Origin: Eutreptiella sp. 'Long Island Sound 2002'
Lineage: Eukaryota; Protista; Euglenida
DNA length: 64,000 bases
Direction: 5' to 3'
Assembly: GCA_964036045.1 (NCBI GenBank)
Contig: OZ038378.1
Span: forward strand, 4,464,001 to 4,528,000
The notes beneath the pieces are model-generated. The model was not told the DNA's origin. It searched no databases and was given only the letters and a program-made list of their open reading frames with translations. The translations under genes and the position numbers were made by a program. The stretch's first letter is position 1, and every line of letters begins with the position of its first letter. Below, one piece after another: positions 1-36,461 of this stretch.

Positions 1-1158
1 GGCCTCGCGCACTCAAGGTCACGGAAACAGTTGTGTACGGAAGACAACAAAAACAGGACACGAAGTACACAACGTACGAACACTGAAATAAAAGCTCGGC
101 AAAAATGTAGAAGCCCTTGAGGGCATATAATTGCATTCGCGTCGAAGGCGAGTGCACGAGGCCTCGCGCACACATGACTGCAAAAAGAGGCAAAACACTT
201 GGGTTAATGGTGACTTACTTCTTCTTCGGTCCAGCAACCTTAGCCAACCTGGAACCCAGGTTTCTTGCCACCGCACTTGTCCCACTTGGGGAGGCAACGG
301 TACCACGAGACGGCTGGGCACCAGAACGCGAGGGCGGCTTGAAGTCTGCACTAGCACTCGCAGCAGTCTTCGCTTTCTTCTTCCGCTACTCCTTACCAGA
401 TTCGGGACTTGCATCGAAGTGAGCGGCATGCCCGCTTGCGCTTCGGCTGGGTCTCCAGTACTTGCTCCGGATCCTCTTCTTCTTCCTCCTCGTCGGCATC
501 GTCGGCGTCTGATTCCCCGGGCTTGTCCGATTCCTTCTCTTTTCCTTTCGCCTGCTTCTTGCTACTCGAGGGGGTTTCCTTTTTCGGCTGCAGTAGCCTG
601 AGTTGGTACAACTTTGGCAGTCTTCTTCACCTTGGCTTGCATTGGCAAGGTAGGTGCAGGCGCAACAGGCTCAGTGTCATCAGCGGGGGCCTCAGTCACA
701 ACCTCTTCTTGGACGGCTTCTGCAGCATGCACCTTCTGGTGCCCTTCATACCCTCGGTTGGTGTCCAAAACCCACAGTGGAATGCCACGCAGAAGCCACT
801 CTTCTTGAGTATCCCAAGTTGCAGCTGTTGCTCCCTGCTCCGTCTGATCAGCCTCCAACATGTACCGCATGATGATTGCATGCTGCAGAGCACCTCCAAC
901 GGCATTCGCAAGGTCCTTTTGCTTGATCGCTGACACAACCAGAAACCCCACTTTAGTCCTCCCCGACTCGTCCGACATTGCAATCCTTGCGGCCATAGCA
1001 GGCGTGTCGTCCACAACAACCACTGCATCAGCATGCCCACTGTCCAAAAGATATTTGTCCAGGTACCACAGCACGTGAATCAGAGGCATGAAACCACCGA
1101 GGTTCTTGTTCTGCATCTCTTCGAAATGTCCAGCGGAATACGTCACATAGTTCAGTAA

Positions 1159-1255
1159 CTGTAAATGTGATGAATAAAGACGAATAACGGAGGCAGCAGT
1201 GCGCGAGGCCTCGCGCACACAACGGCATAGAAACCGGCGAAAGAAGCAGATATAC
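1159..1255 (-). other. Spliceosomal intron 4 (97 nt) containing palindrome copy
   Basis: CAG|GTATAT...ACATTTACAG|TTA. Splicing joins ORF 1028-2014 to ORF 562-1305 in phase 0. Confidence 0.85.
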
Positions 1256-1953
1256 CTGCTTATCCCAGCGACTCGTTGTTCCGATCCACATACAGTGCTC
1301 GTCAAACTGATACATGTTGCTTGTCACGGGACCCGATAACCAAGAGTATACCGGCAACCGGGCATGGTACAAAGGCACTGTGGTTGGATCCTTGTCCTCC
1401 TCCATACGCCACAGCCTCTGCATGTCGCGGCCAATACGGTGCACAACATCAGCCTCGCCATGGAAAAAGACGTCCTTCCCCAGCATCATCACATCCAACA
1501 GCCACTTCGGAACAAATCTTGCAGAGTCATATTCAACAAAAAGGTCAGCATTGATGACCCACAACGGGTACTGCAAATCCCGGAAACGGGCTGGTGATGT
1601 CTCTGCAATATCCTCAATAAGGCATGCCGTCAAAGCGAATTTGCTCCCTTGCTCGTCCTGCTTGGAGACATTGATCACGTCGCCAGTACTCAGCTGTGTC
1701 TGTGGCGGTGCCGATGATGGTGCCTCGGTCTTCCTTTGCAGTTGCTTCCGCACGGCCAGCGTCTGCGGTAATGGAGGTGCCCCCTTGTCCCCAGTCCGCC
1801 ACAGAGGTGCACTGGTCAACGTCTTCCACTTTGGCCACGGCGACCGGAACCTCGCACTTTTTGCGTCCTCCCAATAACCCCAATTTCCCAGCCCAATCTT
1901 CAGTTGCGTCGTGCCCAGCGCTGCGACTTCTGCTCGGATCTTCGCATTGGCAG

Positions 1954-2024
1954 CTGTACAGATGTGAAAAAGGTGGTTGAGTGCGCGAGCCCTCGCGCAC
2001 TGAAGCTGCGACACTGACGCATAC
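1954..2024 (-). other. Spliceosomal intron 3 (71 nt) containing palindrome copy
   Basis: GTATGC...CTTTTTCACATCTGTACAG. Splicing joins the 2032-frame to ORF 1028-2014 in phase 1. Confidence 0.85.
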
Positions 2025-2325
2025 CTGCGGTCTAGTTGACATACTGCCTGTCTGGATGGTCAAGATGGAAAATAACCCATTGTTCCGTAATCAGCGCGTC
2101 AATATAGTTCTGGGTGGTGCGTAAGGTCGAGTCCTTCAGGTTCATGTGCGCACAGACTTTCTGCAATAAGCTTGGTAGATGCAGCCCCTCCAGCTTCTTG
2201 AAGGCATTCCTTGTAACGTCCTCTTTCTTGCTCTTATTCTCGAGGTTCTTCATACCAGCTACCGCCTCACGGCGGCAGTAATACGCCAGAGAGAAGATGT
2301 CCCTCCAGTTCCTGAATGTCGAGTC

Positions 2326-2398
2326 CTGCGAGGGAAAACAGTGTCATGGAGTGTGCGAGGCCTCGCGCACTATAACCGTGCGATACACGAATACATAC
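2326..2398 (-). other. Spliceosomal intron 2 (73 nt) containing palindrome copy
   Basis: GTATGT...TTTTCCCTCGCAG. Splicing puts ORF 2267-2674 in frame with ORF 2032-2253. Confidence 0.85.
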
Positions 2399-2760
2399 TG
2401 TGTGTCCTGCTTCCTTCAACGCCTCGGGTGCAAGAAACGCAGAGTTGACGGCAGACTGGACAACAGCAATCTTGAACCGCTCGAAATCTTGTGGCTCTTT
2501 TTCCCGCTTCTGGTCCTCAATGTACCACAACATGTTGTCCAGCGCCTCGGACAGCGGAATCCACGTCACAGACTGGCTGCCAGCTTGTTGCAATCCTGCA
2601 ACCTTGGCCCGGATCCTCCAAGGCGTTTCGTACTTGAGAATGTCAACGTAGCAAAACTCCTGCCACTCCTCCAATTATTTGCCTTCTGCGAGCCGCAGTT
2701 CCCGAATCTTTCTACATGTTTCTGTGCCATGTTGACCATTCAAAACGTAAAGTGAGCCAT

Positions 2761-2826
2761 CTGCAAAGCAAATCATGTACCGCAGCAAAGAGAAGAAACG
2801 TCTTCGATCGCACAGGCGAGTCATAC
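2761..2826 (-). other. Spliceosomal intron 1 of ParB-like gene (66 nt, no palindrome)
   Basis: GTATGA...TTTGCTTTGCAG. Removal gives DS/DGSLYVLNGQH. The intron is 3n and stop-free, so it is less certain than the others. Confidence 0.6.
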
Positions 2827-3189
2827 CACTATCCTCCCATGCCGTTACGCGCAACGGTCCAGATGGTTTAATGGTGGCAGTGCTTGGTATCCCGTCACTT
2901 GCTTGGCAACGTCGTCATAGTTGATGGATTGGATCTGTCCTCGCTCCTTGGTCTTGTCCATTTGCAAATCAGTAATCTTTACCTTCACGGCTTTACCATT
3001 CTCCTTCCACAGCCACTGTTGCACGTCGACTGTGAGCTTCATCTCTGGTATTGGCTTCTTCTCACCCTTCTTCTTGCGTCCTTTCTTCGGCGTGTCCCCT
3101 TGGTCGGTCCCTGGTGACGCCTCCATGGCCTCTGCATCTGGTGCTGGACGTTCTGGCGACCCTGGTTGACTCATGATGCCAAAAAATAC

Positions 3190-3323
3190 CTGAAAAGGGC
3201 AAATGGCATGACATGAAACACGGTCATTTGAACTCCGAAATCAGTCGAAACGGTATTATGCAGGTCGTTTTCGCAAATCTGTTCCACAACCGTCTTTGTT
3301 GTGACTAATTCCACGGGACTTAC
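3190..3323 (-). other. Probable 5'-UTR intron (or splice acceptor) of the ParB-like gene
   Basis: TTAG|GTAAGT at 3323 and CCCTTTTCAG| at 3190, 15 nt upstream of the ATG at 3174. A palindrome copy lies immediately 5' of the donor. Confidence 0.55.
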
Positions 3324-3427
3324 CTAATGCGCGAGGCCTCGCGCACTCACATCGCATTACAGACCTGTTTTTCGTAACGTTTAGTGCGCCAGGCCTCGCG
3401 CACTGCGGGTGTCAGTTACCGCAAGCG

Positions 3428-5413
3428 TTACCGCAGGTTGCGTGTTGCTGCTTCCTGTATGTTGGCATCCGTATCTGTTCTCCGCCCCACAACAGCATCC
3501 AGTTTCCGTTTCAGTTGGTTGGTGGGATTTGTTTTCTGGTCAATGAGGGCATCCAGTACGCTCTGACCAAGTAGCCGGTAGTGGTCGTAACCAAGGGGTT
3601 GTGTAGGTGAGGGTGGAAATCTCGGTAACCTCCGCGGCCACGAATTTGCAACGGTGCTGACTCTGTCAGACTCCCATTCCACATAGGCCATGCAAATCCG
3701 GTCTGTCGCCAAAAATCCTGTCAGTCGTTGTCGCATTCTGTGTACCAGGTTCTAGGGAACGTTTTGCACACCCACGCGTTTGCCACCAGGACCACCCTTT
3801 AGTAACAAGTAATGGTTTTCCACCTCCTCAACAGTAACAGAACCCGTGTTTTTCGCCTTGTCCCGCACCAGCTTGCTCAACATCCCTTCTCCAAACTCCT
3901 CTGAGTGTGCCTTACCGGGCAGGTCCTGGTGCCACTTGCTGTTGTACAACAATGTGCACATGATTGTGCATTCATACTTCAGTACGGTGTCACACGGTCC
4001 TCGACGCAGCCTCCGCAACAGACACAAACTCAACTGCAACACCTCCTGAGCTCGTGACCCGGTACCGTTGTTTTCCCCCGACCAGTTGCATTCCCGTACC
4101 AGGTGACCCAAGTACAACAACAAGGGGCACCATTCCGACAACAAAGTCAAGACTGCGTTTGCCACTGCTGCCCTGTTGGCATGCGCAGTGTCACAACCAC
4201 TGATCGCGGTTGCAGCTTGTGGCTTGCGACGATACGGGCGTAGTATTCTGGGGGTGGCAAGCATCAGCGCAGCAATGGTTTTTTCCATAACTATCAGTTT
4301 GGGGTATGATAGTATGGTTGAACCAGGGCGTAGCAGACCTTTCCGTAGGTAGGTTAGAATAGGCCAGAACACCCGAAAAGTATGAGTAACAACGAACTTG
4401 TAGGCATGCCAGACACCGTAAACTACAGGCACATAACGTAGGTAAGCACGCATGTTCCATCGTTGGTTCTTGGCACCGTACAGCAACTTTAGTATCATGT
4501 AGTGTATGTTTTCGTCAACCAACAGCGGTAGAACTCTGTTTGTCTGTTGTGCTGCGTCCTTTGCAAAGTGTAACAAGTTTAACAGACCAACACCACCAGT
4601 TACCTTTTCTTTTGACAGGGCAAACGGGCGCCACACCGGTGCTTGCACAGTCCTTGCATCCCTCCTCACATCCAACGGTGCTCTCACGTTTCTGGTGTTT
4701 GGTACACACCCATCCGCATACCCCATGTCACGCAAAGTCTGGGGGATTCTCCGTTCACGCTATTGCACAGCCCTTGCGACTGTCGTTATCCGTGCTGCCA
4801 GGTCCTCAACGGCTGGATGTCCTGCCCAATACGTGGGCCTCTGTTTCAGTTGAAGTACTGCCATTGCAGTAGAGTTTTGCGACCGATCACTTTCGTCTGG
4901 GTGTGTTGTGTATTGTGCCCGGTACCAGTTGTCTATCCACGGCACGCAACACGATGAAAGCACCAGTGACCACGTTGCTTTAAGTGCTGCTGCTGCCTGT
5001 TCGTCCACTGTATCTGCGGCAGCATCTGCTTGCCCAAGTCGTACTTTTGTTCGTCTTTCTGTTTGCGTTAGGTACCCTGTTGTGTTTCCCGGTTTTTTCC
5101 TGTTTGGTACTGCCCGTTGACGCATCAACAGGTACAGGTTCTGGCCCTCCTGTCGCAAAATGCGCACCCAGCGCTTGTCCTCTTGCCTCCTAGCTGCTGG
5201 CAAACTGTGGCGCGTTCTTTTGTTGAACCTGAGTCGCTGTGCAAATGTTCAAACCAGTTGCGCTGCCAGGTCGTTTCGTTTCAGTCCTTTCCACAGGTCG
5301 TCTGCTGTTTGGTATGCTGGTTCTGCCGCGCATGCCTCTCGTAGTGCTGCTGCTCCTTTGCTTACTTCTGCAATCATTCGATGCGTTACGGATTTTCTGG
5401 CTCGAAGTGGCAT
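3428..5413 (-). pseudogene. DDE-type transposase-like protein (~660 aa), Academ/DUF6589-like by motif pattern; intronless, three in-frame stops
   Basis: A single frame runs from ATG 5413 (MPLRARK) through ORFs 4760-5203, 3752-4735 and 3428-3736, interrupted by TGA 5249-51, TAG 4760-62 and TAG 3752-54. Motifs: WIDNWY..NSTAMAV, LLVDENIHY, VYGVWHAYK, HSEEFGEGMLSK. Confidence 0.6.
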
Positions 5414-7904
5414 TTTGCGTCTTTCTCTGTTGAATTAAATTTGCGCACATATTTTAATTATCGTTTCGCACAGCGATCTTTAAAAAAAGTGTGTTTGAAA
5501 ACATCTGGCCTTTTCCTGTCCTCATTTCTGGTGCGGGTGCTGCCGCCGCAATTTGTATTTGGTGTCTACGTGCGCTCCGTTCCCAGTAACCGAAAACTGT
5601 TTTCGCAACCACAATTTCCTGTTCTGTTTCCGTCTTTAAACCCAGTTGGAAAAAAAAAACCATATCTATCGGGCAGCGAAGGCTACGGCCGCTATTAGAA
5701 CTGGACACATCTGCCATTGAGTGGCTGTTGGAAAAAAGCAAATCATTCCCCTGATCCCCTGAAAAATATGACAAAGGTTACCGATGTGTAATCGACTGTC
5801 ACAGGTGGTAGCCGTGAAAGGGAATGTAAATACCGGCGTAGCCTGACCTGCCTGCTTTTTCATTTTCTTGCGTGGTTTGAGTGCGCGAGGCCTCGCGCAC
5901 TGATTGTTTCCGTGGGAAATGTTCTATACCGTGTTATATCTGACCAACACGGTGTCTACACACACGTACACCGGAAAAAATCAAATGTGTTCGTCTGTCT
6001 GGTATTGTACCTGCAATTGTACGCGTCATATCCATTCCGTAAATTAATACATAACGTGACCTGAGTGCGCGAGGCATCGCGCACTCCGGATGCCGAAATT
6101 TGTATTTCATTTTCACTTTAGAGTATATGTGTTTCCCCTAACATGGGAAGTCCGACAGTCATACACTTCCAATGCTCCTTGGTCAACACAATCCTAGTTT
6201 TAATACCGTGTGGGACCTGCGTATTTCCGCAAACGCCAGTCCTTACGGGTTTTTAGGTTTCTTAATAAACTCTACTTTGAATATCTTGAGTGCGCGAAGC
6301 CTCGCGCACTCAGAACGCCAGAGAAATGTAAAAAACGTCACATTCAGGAACACGGAGTTGCACAACACTAAAAAAGCAATTTATTTCACTACGCCCAAAA
6401 TCACGTTCATCAAACATCCAAAAAAATAGTTTTTTTGCCCTGTTGCGAACCGGTCCTTTTCTGCGCATTCGGCGCGCAAAACAGGGTGCAGTTTGCGTGG
6501 GCTAAGCGTGTCAAACTTAAAATGCGGCTTGCGAACACGCCAAGAAAGTTGGTGCTCTTGCACAGCATGGTGTATGGTGCCAGTAATGCAATCTAATTGG
6601 GTACCATGACTCATCGTGGTGCAATGTGTAAGATGGCGATAGTAAGAGGATGGGTATCGGTGATGGTGTCGGGATGCAACAGTATATGTGGGTTACTATG
6701 CTCTATAAAGCGGAAGAGCCGCACACTACGAAGAATTGCCGAACAAATGTTTGCTGGAGCAATACCACCCCGCTTGGCTTGCTGACATTCCGCATTCTGA
6801 TGTGCAGAATTGTTGGAATGAAATCAGTGATTGGTTTTAAACAACAATACTAGATGGATACCGGTTCCAAGCCCTACAAGCTGGTCTTAATTGTAAATCT
6901 TGATTACTGAAGAAGATTTCTTGGTTATGGTTTTGCAACCCTCTTTAGCCTCCATCTTTCGGCTCCAGGGTGAGCAACCTATTTTGGCAGCCAGCAGCAA
7001 GCATTAGCAAGCAGAATGAAACGCAGCAAAAAACTGTTTGGGGACACTGTGGCTAAAAACCGGCATTCAATTCACTCAAAAATGACCATAGAGCAGATGC
7101 GCATCGCTGAACACAGGTTTCGTGTGGTTTCAGTCATGCAACCCGTTCTACGGCAGACGGTGTCACCAAAATGACCTTTTTTTTTTTACAGTTTTTAAGA
7201 TGATCATCATGAAACTTCAGTACCATCACTAGTCATGCATCCAATGAGGGCCCTTCTTCTTCCACAGTGATTGGGCCATCACATCAGTGTCTCATCTGGC
7301 GTCTTCCAAAGCATGATGTCATGCTGTGGCCCATTTTGATGTGAAAATCAGCCATTTCTCAGCCTGTTTTCAGGAATACTGTCCTAAATGCTCTGGTCGA
7401 TCGCTGGTGTGACGCGTAGGTTTCTCCAATGAGTGCCACTCTTCTTCCAAAGCGATTCCGTACCCAAAGTGCAAAACTAGGAACCAGCTCAGTCCTGGCC
7501 ACAAGTCCTGATTGGGCGGGGTACTAGGGCCAGGGTTGGGGTTGAGGATGCTGTTGGGGTGCAAAATGGACAAAATGATCATTTGGGCGCCTTTGGTGCC
7601 TGTGGAGCTTGGGCTCTACGGACACATGGACTCCTGAGGCTGTACCTTCGGCAACTAACCAATCCCAGTACCACAAATGAGCAAAGAATTCTGCCATCTG
7701 TACCCATGCACATCATTAAAAGAGCGGTTGTTGGGTGATCAAAATGCATTCTTTTTCCCATTTAAAAGTGCAATGGCATGCACACCAAGGGGGCAGTGAA
7801 ATGGCTGCGCAATCCCTGTTGTCTCAGTACCCGGGGAAAACTGAAATGGCTTTGTAACCCCTACCTTATAAAGGGAAACTATAATGGCTGTGCCACCCCT
7901 GACC

Positions 7905-35560: not shown

Positions 35561-36461
35561 CTGAGATGCCGCAACAACTCGCGTCCGCCAATCCGACCCA
35601 TCAAAGCAACAGGGGGCAGGCAATGCAAAAACACCACTCCCTCCTGGCGTCCCTCTCTCCCCACTTTGCTGGCGTCCCTTTCTCCCCACTTTGCCTCAAA
35701 GAGCACTGGATTCAATCAATTCTGCCCAAAAGGATGTGGGCACAATCAAAATCTGCACTCCTGAGTTGTGTCAGAGCTTTTCAAAGCAGTTTTCAAATGG
35801 CATCCAAATGTGGCCGTAATGAATTCTGCCATATTTCAAGATGGGGACATAGGGTGTGGGTCCAAACATCAAGGGCAGATCAAAATTGCACAAGTGGGGG
35901 GGGGGGGGGATCCCATCTCAGATTCCTTACGTGGGGGGCACTGTTTGGGACAAGGGGGGGGGGGGGGGTTAATGCAGTGAGATGCGATGGGGAGACAAGA
36001 AGCTTACAGCCAAAACAGTACGCTGAAAAGTGATACAATGAGATAGAGGAGAACACTAATGCCTCCATATCCATCACACTTGGTACCGCATGGTCCCGTG
36101 CAGAGTCTTCTCTTGTGCTTTGTCTGCTTGCGAATTGCACGACAACCTCCCTTGTCAGCTGTTTGGGTTGACAAAGATGAAATGGTCCGTGCAACGTGCA
36201 TGCACTCATGATGAGAAATGGAAGGTATTTGACCTATCTAATCCATAATGTGCAAAGTAGTTGCCGCACAAACAAATGCTTGTGTTTGTGCTTTTTGTTT
36301 GTCCTTGTGCCATCGGCCGTGAGTGCAGTACATACAATTTGAAGGCGGATGGGACAGAATGTAACTCACGCGGTAAAAGTGGGGCAACACATGCTTTCGG
36401 GCTGTCAGAAATCTGATGGCCGATCTTGTCATTGTGCGCGAGGGGTGTGTTGGGCTAATTG

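Follow-up and report, generated by a model that had tools for sequence, protein, structure and literature searches.

Accessory genes with a ParB-like part have recently been described in DNA transposons of algae. The Plavaka elements of Bostrychia moritziana harbor the accessory gene PAG3, whose N-terminal part weakly resembles ParB at an HHpred E-value of 0.29 (bioRxiv 10.1101/2025.02.11.637652; Curr Biol 2025). Arrays of inverted repeats adjoin this gene and its authors propose self-binding (bioRxiv 10.1101/2025.02.11.637652). Sola1-1_Ec32 from Ectocarpus encodes an accessory protein that combines a ParB-like part with a DNA methyltransferase and, according to the proposal in that paper, binds and modifies the element it comes from (Genome Biol 2025, PMC12477816); fusions of ParB with a methylase were noted by Iyer, Abhiman and Aravind in 2011, as cited in the same paper (PMC12477816). 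Here, a stretch of 64,000 nucleotides from Eutreptiella sp. 'Long Island Sound 2002' (contig OZ038378.1, positions 4,464,001 to 4,528,000; called the window) was analyzed. Its positions 1–6506 hold the decayed copy of a cut-and-paste transposon from a euglenid alga. This transposon is high-copy and has two genes, one transposase-like and the other, called G1, spliced; it also harbors ten copies of one palindrome. The initial annotation suggested that this may be an undescribed family of transposons in which a ParB-like protein binds internal palindromes; 'undescribed' was overstated, since ParB-like accessory genes in algal transposons were published in 2025 (PAG3 and Sola1) with the same idea of self-binding. 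This idea is already published, as a proposal; the euglenid family, the dispersed and intronic sites and their deep conservation are new. A literature search for elements of this kind in Euglena yielded no paper.

Similar to the Plavaka elements, the euglenid element has an accessory gene beside the transposase, a weakly ParB-like N-terminal part of the encoded protein (for G1 by look-alikes only) and inverted repeats by the accessory gene. It differs in the transposase superfamily, which is Plavaka/CACTA-like there whereas DUF6589-like look-alikes are seen here, and in the host lineage, here Euglenozoa. Furthermore, the repeats at PAG3 are tandem arrays, whereas ten single sites are dispersed over the euglenid element, introns included, and in contrast to PAG3 with its 2-oxoglutarate (2OG)-oxygenase part, the C-terminal two thirds of G1 matched nothing. 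With Sola1-1_Ec32 the element shares a putative ParB-like accessory protein in an algal DNA transposon. However, the domains of the Ectocarpus protein are seen with standard profiles, whereas PF02195 and PF01555 do not match G1 and a model of the C-terminal part displays no methylase fold; also, the Sola1-1_Ec32 paper reports no palindrome set, whereas ten palindromes are present here.

In bacteria, parS sites often lie in or near parB. This resembles the present arrangement, where one palindrome occurs in several copies within and near a gene whose product is putatively ParB-like. Unlike the bacterial ParB-parS system, the element has only two genes and no ParA partner, no helix-turn-helix (HTH) was seen in G1 and the CTP-binding GERRxR motif is missing. 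The site is 22–24 bp long and GC-rich in contrast to the 16-bp parS, and it resides in a eukaryotic transposon, for which a segregation role is not implied. The maize En/Spm (CACTA) system has two proteins, TnpA, which binds to numerous subterminal motifs, and TnpD, which cuts. Here the likeness is a transposase with a second protein and many copies of a short motif that is distinct from the terminal inverted repeat (TIR). In contrast to the 12-bp subterminal repeats near the ends of En/Spm, the palindromes occur element-wide and in introns, and the proteins are unrelated.

The 22-mer AGTGCGCGAGGCCTCGCGCACT is present in nine full copies (at most two mismatches) and in one copy cut by the window start, all of them within non-coding parts of the element. 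These sites are listed without a strand:

6289–6310: palindrome site 1, 5′ region, one mismatch.
6064–6085: palindrome site 2, 5′ region, one mismatch.
5880–5901: palindrome site 3, 5′ region, perfect.
3383–3404: palindrome site 4, intergenic pair; the pair spacing of 55–57 bp is kept in the relatives L005, L007, L008 and L001.
3326–3347: palindrome site 5, intergenic pair, 22-mer match.
2350–2371: palindrome site 6, intron 1 of G1, 22-mer match.
1980–2001: palindrome site 7, intron 2 of G1, with the centre GGGC, a variant common to the family.
1198–1219: palindrome site 8, intron 3 of G1, 22-mer match.
151–172: palindrome site 9, 3′ untranslated region (UTR) of G1; an RNA contig extends to 131.
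1–12: palindrome site 10, cut by the window start; its counterpart in L007 lies 159 bp beyond site 9.

The initial annotation had counted ten copies spread through the element, which agrees with this list. No further copy was found in the 64-kb window, and a shuffled sequence yields none (chance expectation 0). The lone half-site noticed earlier outside the element is real (GTGCGCGAGG at 36435–36444), and one 10-mer of this kind could be due to chance. G1 contains or adjoins seven of the ten sites, and three of its four introns harbor one, the intron at 2826–2761 being without.

The set of sites is conserved far beyond the window. L007, a young copy from the public assembly ENA ERZ25074135 that is flanked by a target-site duplication (TSD) and serves as reference for the element ends, carries ten sites in an order identical to that of the window, with three sites in the region from the end to the transposase gene, a pair 57 bp apart between the genes, one each in introns 1, 2 and 3 and two after G1. 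L003, with a transposase of about 62% identity, has eight or nine sites with the same site sequence next to a different terminal repeat (CCTAAATTGCACCC...). In L008, where the transposase is 49% and G1 about 30% identical, again ten sites are found (three, a pair 55 bp apart, introns 0, 1 and 3, and two); their 18-bp core TGCGCGAGGCCTCGCGCA shows no difference, and the adjoining outer base pair is symmetrically changed, with TT..AA in place of GT..AC. L001 is a second copy of the L008 family. A very distant relative, L002 (JGI metagenome 3300060423), encodes a G1 relative of 25–30% identity whose introns 2 and 3 contain two copies of CACCGCGAGGCCTCGCCGTG. The central GCGAGGCCTCGC is the same as in the other families, with three symmetric double changes in the outer arm; the two quasi-palindromes (L002:433–454 and 1238–1257) have a single asymmetry, which is common to both. 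What is conserved across the families is the two-fold symmetry with a fixed centre; the conserved core spans 12–18 bp.

The sequence around the sites, both intronic and intergenic, is not retained. For the matching introns 1 and 3 of L007, L003 and L008, flank similarity is no better than shuffled while the core is identical at 17–18 of 18 positions, and local flank scores of L007 versus L008 agree with the lack of flank similarity. No site occurs in about 150 kb of non-element DNA from the window and the loci L001–L008. The sites are under selection because their number, broadly similar layout and core are kept at 25–49% protein identity while the flanks cannot be aligned. The palindromes are therefore element-specific working sites, at which a protein probably docks.

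This conservation bears on the view that the palindromes have no function and are footprints of small mobile insertions, either introner-like or resembling miniature inverted-repeat transposable elements (MITEs), or chance GC palindromes. In introners, known from Micromonas, Aureococcus and Amoebophrya, the unit is the whole intron, with inverted as well as direct repeats at its borders (PMC7789003). Similar to these, the element displays a repeated intronic sequence with hairpin potential, most introns are 67–74 nt long, and a weak flank similarity of introns 1 and 2 was seen (p~0.014, uncorrected for 15 tests). In contrast to introners, sharing is limited to the internal 22-mer, the introns begin and end with an ordinary GT..AG and have no border repeats, and half of the sites lie outside introns, some of them intergenic, with zero expected by chance. 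Furthermore, matching introns of different families keep the core but have unrelated flanks. An origin of the introner type was rejected, as the flanks are not significantly alike after correction and the borders are ordinary GT..AG. A lack of function is already contradicted by the conservation data, and we regard it as very improbable.

An exact centring of the palindrome in its intron was also considered and rejected: it holds within 1.5 nt in the window family and fails in the distant family, where the flanks measure 36/19, 34/23 and 29/22 nt. Intron 2 of L008, which has no full site, contains GGTGCGCCGCAC (within L008:10860–10985), that is, the outer palindrome arms without the centre; this looks like a site that has lost its centre.

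A metagenome scan with the 18-mer core yielded at least 120 GC-rich, apparently bacterial contigs (L009–L128) with one exact copy each, fifteen of which also have one or two degenerate matches, often 430–470 bp away. In the one contig examined, the 18-mer (L032:3886–3903) lies inside the coding sequence of a gene similar to SIS-type sugar isomerases (..KLREASRTWAES..). None of the metagenome contigs with the 18-mer encodes a relative; therefore, these matches look like a coding coincidence, apparently unrelated to the element.

The ten 22–24-bp palindromes would be cis-acting, two-fold symmetric docking sites for a protein dimer. Tentatively, and with confidence that stays short of even, we favor that this dimer is formed by a protein encoded on the element itself, most likely G1. 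G1 is the likeliest binder, given that its gene contains or adjoins seven of the ten sites and that its N-terminal part has a ParB/Srx-like look. Binding would provide the element with a recognition of its own DNA, which could be used for controlling the expression of G1 and the transposase, for marking or shielding the element, or for keeping its DNA together in the course of transposition. Here, introns would be a way for a compact element to carry sites inside a gene while the protein stays unchanged. A more specific form, self-recognition similar to ParB/parS, is possible yet doubtful: dimers of G1 would load on the ten palindromes, several of them in its own introns, and coat or bridge the element DNA, and sites and protein would have been co-inherited since before the 25–30% divergence. 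Such coating or bridging would shield the element from silencing, set its expression or keep the excised DNA together.

If G1 binds the sites, the family would be a clean and tractable example of a eukaryotic transposon that recognizes its own DNA via a ParB-like protein. The deep conservation supplies defined probes, namely the 12–18-bp core, the family-specific outer bases and two full ten-site elements, in addition to natural intact genes. Separately, the introns appear to serve as safe housing for cis-acting DNA sites within the own gene of a mobile element.

What the G1 protein looks like was addressed by several searches. The intact open reading frame (ORF) P0084, to which the N-terminal part of the window copy is 88–90% identical, matched no Pfam family at E≤10, no PHROG or NCBIfam at E≤1 and no PDB chain at E≤10. 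In the ESM-Atlas, the look-alikes of the N-terminal part are unnamed eukaryotic clusters (0.96), DUF3723 (0.95), ParB_N (0.93, rank 23) and DUF6551 (0.90), and the stored model of the best look-alike compares to ParB_N clusters with template modeling (TM) scores of 0.53–0.57. A strand motif [NS]GQH[GS] is present as NGQHG in the window family and as SGQHS in the L008 family. For the core encoded by exons 3–4, the best ESM-Atlas score was 0.78 and uninformative. An AlphaFold model of this core (P0012) reached a predicted local distance difference test (pLDDT) value of 55, and a Foldseek search with it against the PDB and AFDB clusters gave nothing better than E 0.03, with all TM scores below 0.25. 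No Pfam match to the methylase PF01555 or the ParB family PF02195 was found in G1, and none to PF01555 for exons 3–4 or their relatives; a possible resemblance of exons 3–4 to methylase motifs is seen by eye only, without support from any tool. Also XPG or helicase matches were not obtained for G1 with Pfam. Of the ParB-type core proposed by the initial annotation, the ESM-Atlas look-alikes, which hint at ParB_N/DUF3723, keep the idea alive, whereas the profile searches are blank and an arginine is missing; the ParB/Srx fold hit that AlphaFold and Foldseek were expected to give did not appear for G1, its models being unusable or unmatched. Because family and PDB sequence searches are blank and both AlphaFold models of G1 were poor, the labels of G1 and of the transposase stay leads: the ParB-like nature of G1 is weakly indicated, a lead and not a result.

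Several observations weigh against G1 as the binder. Binding of the palindromes is a candidate role and the ParB fold of G1 is unconfirmed: all ORF pieces as well as the intact P0084, P0238 and P0240 gave nothing credible in Pfam, PHROGs, NCBIfam and PDB sequences, and no HTH or CTP motif was detected by Pfam, PHROG and NCBIfam profiles. The strand motif keeps the GQH of DGQHR-type ParB/Srx proteins, but the arginine of DGQHR/GERRxR is missing. An AlphaFold model of P0084:1–258 (33 sequences, a shallow alignment; this ORF reads through intron 0) had a pLDDT of 38 and was unusable. Furthermore, the core has not varied, even though G1 is down to about 30% identity and each family has its own TIRs. 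A host factor that evolves slowly, or a structural signal, would explain this at least equally well, and the symmetric covariation is equally expected for a hairpin of RNA or DNA. Finally, nearly all sites belong to parts absent from the processed RNA, namely introns and the segment preceding the spliced-leader acceptor.

Alternatively, the palindromes would be bound by a host protein, for instance a transcription factor, an insulator or a factor of chromatin or methylation, which the element would recruit for its transcription or to escape silencing. Such a factor would account for a core that is identical where the element proteins are only 25–49% identical and where divergence is seen in the TIRs, which probably serve as the transposase sites (CTTAGCCCACGC... 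vs CCTAAATTGC...). However, sites of a host factor would be expected elsewhere in the genome too, and no copy exists in about 150 kb of surrounding host DNA; also, the outer positions vary by family, and do so symmetrically. On balance, we consider a host factor unlikely.

In the window, the two genes lie in tandem on the minus strand, as had been annotated, and G1 has the following parts:

215–3174, minus strand: G1 pseudogene, exons 3174–2827, 2760–2399, 2325–2025, 1953–1256 and 1158–~215, ATG at 3174.
3191–3192, minus strand: AG acceptor of G1 for spliced-leader trans-splicing, 16 nt upstream of the ATG at 3174.
2761–2826, minus strand: intron 0, 66 nt, GT..AG, in frame, without palindrome; a distant family has a palindrome there.
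2326–2398, minus strand: intron 1, 73 nt, contains palindrome site 6.
1954–2024, minus strand: intron 2, 71 nt, contains palindrome site 7.
1159–1255, minus strand: intron 3, 97 nt, contains palindrome site 8, skipped exactly by RNA contig 1.

The RNA contigs stem from an estuary metatranscriptome (run X1) and were aligned to window positions 1–6000; their source is a relative of about 92% identity. Contig 1 (2010 nt) covers 131–1158, 1256–1956 and 2049–2307, skips the predicted intron 1255–1159 exactly and has 24 letters in place of 1957–2048. Contig 4 skips 2761–2826 exactly and thereby revealed a fourth, previously unpredicted G1 intron of 66 nt in frame. The splicing of G1 claimed by the initial annotation is borne out by these two exact skips at 1159–1255 and 2761–2826 in the relative. 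Furthermore, contig 4 ends at 3190 and continues with the reverse complement of ATTTTTTTTC, which we take to be the 3′ end of the Euglena spliced leader. The exact intron skipping together with the spliced-leader tail therefore indicates that G1 is expressed and both cis- and trans-spliced in living relatives, and that the host is a euglenid. A spliced-leader gene was not found when the window was searched with the leader sequence. A spliced full-length G1 protein was not found either, the 66 representative hits all being exon-sized genomic ORFs from one ENA assembly and one JGI contig.

The palindromes might also act as RNA, where GC hairpins with a 9-bp stem would tune cis- or trans-splicing or feed small RNAs that set the activity of the element. 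Eight of the ten sites are intronic or precede the spliced-leader acceptor or the start of the transposase. Folding gave the predicted hairpins, and the two intergenic sites can pair into a long duplex (−56.8 kcal/mol, z −4.2). Also the changes between families are compensatory, and a motif similar to a 5′ splice site is conserved between the intergenic pair. However, folding of whole introns is no better than shuffled (z −0.4 to −1.4), and the central 12 bp are invariant with the loop included, which a stem alone would not demand. Moreover, the mature 3′ UTR retains one site and another lies past the end of the RNA contig, intron 0 is spliced without a site, and the position of the sites within introns is not conserved (flanks of 16–43 nt). 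A role as RNA is in our view about as unlikely as a host factor.

The motif between the intergenic palindromes lies at ~3355–3375 on the minus strand and reads AACAG|GTATGT, with GTCTGT in the window copy. It is conserved at L007:6790–6805 and in L008 between 9537 and 9573, where the families are otherwise dissimilar. It could be the start of a cis-intron ending at the spliced-leader acceptor AG at 3192–3191.

A piece of G1 is also seen in another context. P0040 (616 aa) consists of eight tandem units of about 70 aa, each with a fragment similar to exon 3 of G1 (YPLWALNAFCFAWFDSA), and looks like a satellite that arose from part of this transposon gene.

The second protein of the element that could bind the palindromes is the transposase. 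Its gene is found upstream of G1:

3431–5413, minus strand: transposase-like pseudogene in a single frame, with candidate D/D/E residues in WIDNWY, VDENIHY and SEEFGEG.

Over 647 aa it aligns without gaps and with 93% identity to the intact 653-aa protein P0238. The motifs WxDNWY, DENIHY and EEFxE are conserved, with a spacing similar to that of a DDE enzyme with a long insertion. In the ESM-Atlas, DUF6589 is found on 70 of the 100 nearest clusters with a best score of 0.96, the recognition value of the query being low. Neither the gene nor its intact relatives gave a Pfam match or a PDB sequence match, and a profile search with the transposase alignment yielded, among the best 120 of 467 hits, one ENA assembly only and no annotated outside relative. 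In run X1 almost no RNA covers the transposase gene, contig depth being a poor measure of expression. Academ elements have a target duplication of 3–4 bp and XPG or helicase cargo. For the Academ assignment of the initial annotation, the DUF6589 look-alikes persist as a lead only, while the TSD of 5 bp in L007 and the lack of an XPG or helicase match in G1 do not fit. A DUF6589/Academ-like transposase is, hence, weakly indicated and is a lead rather than a result.

Binding of the palindromes by this transposase, as internal or subterminal sites for assembly of the transposition complex as in maize elements, would leave G1 with an unrelated job. The family is a cut-and-paste element, and five sites are placed in the end regions, 200–610 bp and ~350–520 bp from the ends. 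On the other hand, the sites are unlike the TIRs, half of them are located mid-element and in G1 introns, and none is found less than 190 bp from an end. Binding by the transposase is rather improbable, and an element-encoded dimer, with G1 as the first candidate, is the reading that we tentatively retain.

The limits of the element were set by comparison with L007. The window copy has the following features at its level:

1–6506, minus strand: dead transposon copy, by alignment to L007.
6477–6506, minus strand: TIR, the minus strand reads CTTAGCCCACGCAAACTGCACCCTGTTTTG, and the identical sequence is found inverted at both ends of L007.
6507–6511, no strand: CGTGT, presumed TSD by the AATAT pair of L007, with the partner outside the window.

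L007:3661–10518 is 94.1% identical to the window over 6526 columns, and the similarity ends exactly at 6506. The element end given earlier (6312) is about 194 bp short of this true end, which the L007 alignment and the TIR define. L007, the copy examined for a TSD, is bounded by inverted CTTAGCCCACGCAAACTGCACCC... repeats with AATAT on either side; the length of the element is therefore 6858 bp and that of its target duplication 5 bp, with CTTAG inverted ends as termini. The window holds a copy of this ~6.86-kb two-gene TIR transposon in minus orientation that is truncated by the window edge, as about 350 bp of the other end (the 3′ end in gene orientation) fall before the window start. TIR, TSD and RNA contigs support the annotated eukaryotic DNA transposon with a transposase-like gene and a second spliced gene.

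That this copy is dead was also annotated correctly, because both genes carry stops or frameshifts. The transposase-like gene has three in-frame stops (TGA 5251–5249, TAG 4762–4760 and TAG 3754–3752), and G1 has a frameshift at ~2872, a TAA at 2677–2675, a TAG in exon 2 and last-exon frameshifts near 565 and 390. The intact relatives that, according to the initial annotation, should be sought exist in multiple copies (P0238 with 65 members, P0084 with 70), and the ORF clusters of intact relatives comprise 65–277 near-identical members spread over many contigs. Thousands of contigs from three runs (X2–X4; probably DNA, from two organisms) align to window positions 1–6000, which indicates that the family is high-copy.

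In the same runs, contigs aligned to window positions 1–6000 have joints at the palindrome positions 170, 1217, 2352, 3327 and 5904, with 34–40 unrelated letters between the joined parts. They could stem from derivatives in which a deletion or rearrangement took place at the repeated sites, or from short contigs being placed ambiguously.

Around the element copies in L001, L004, L005 and L006, the flanks contain retroelement genes (RVT_1, RNase_H, rve, Chromo) and a DDE_1 transposase gene; therefore, the element resides in repeat-rich DNA with nested insertions. In the window, the flanking DNA just beyond the element contains three direct copies of a ~34-nt unit at 7784–7900, with a spacing of 38–45 nt.

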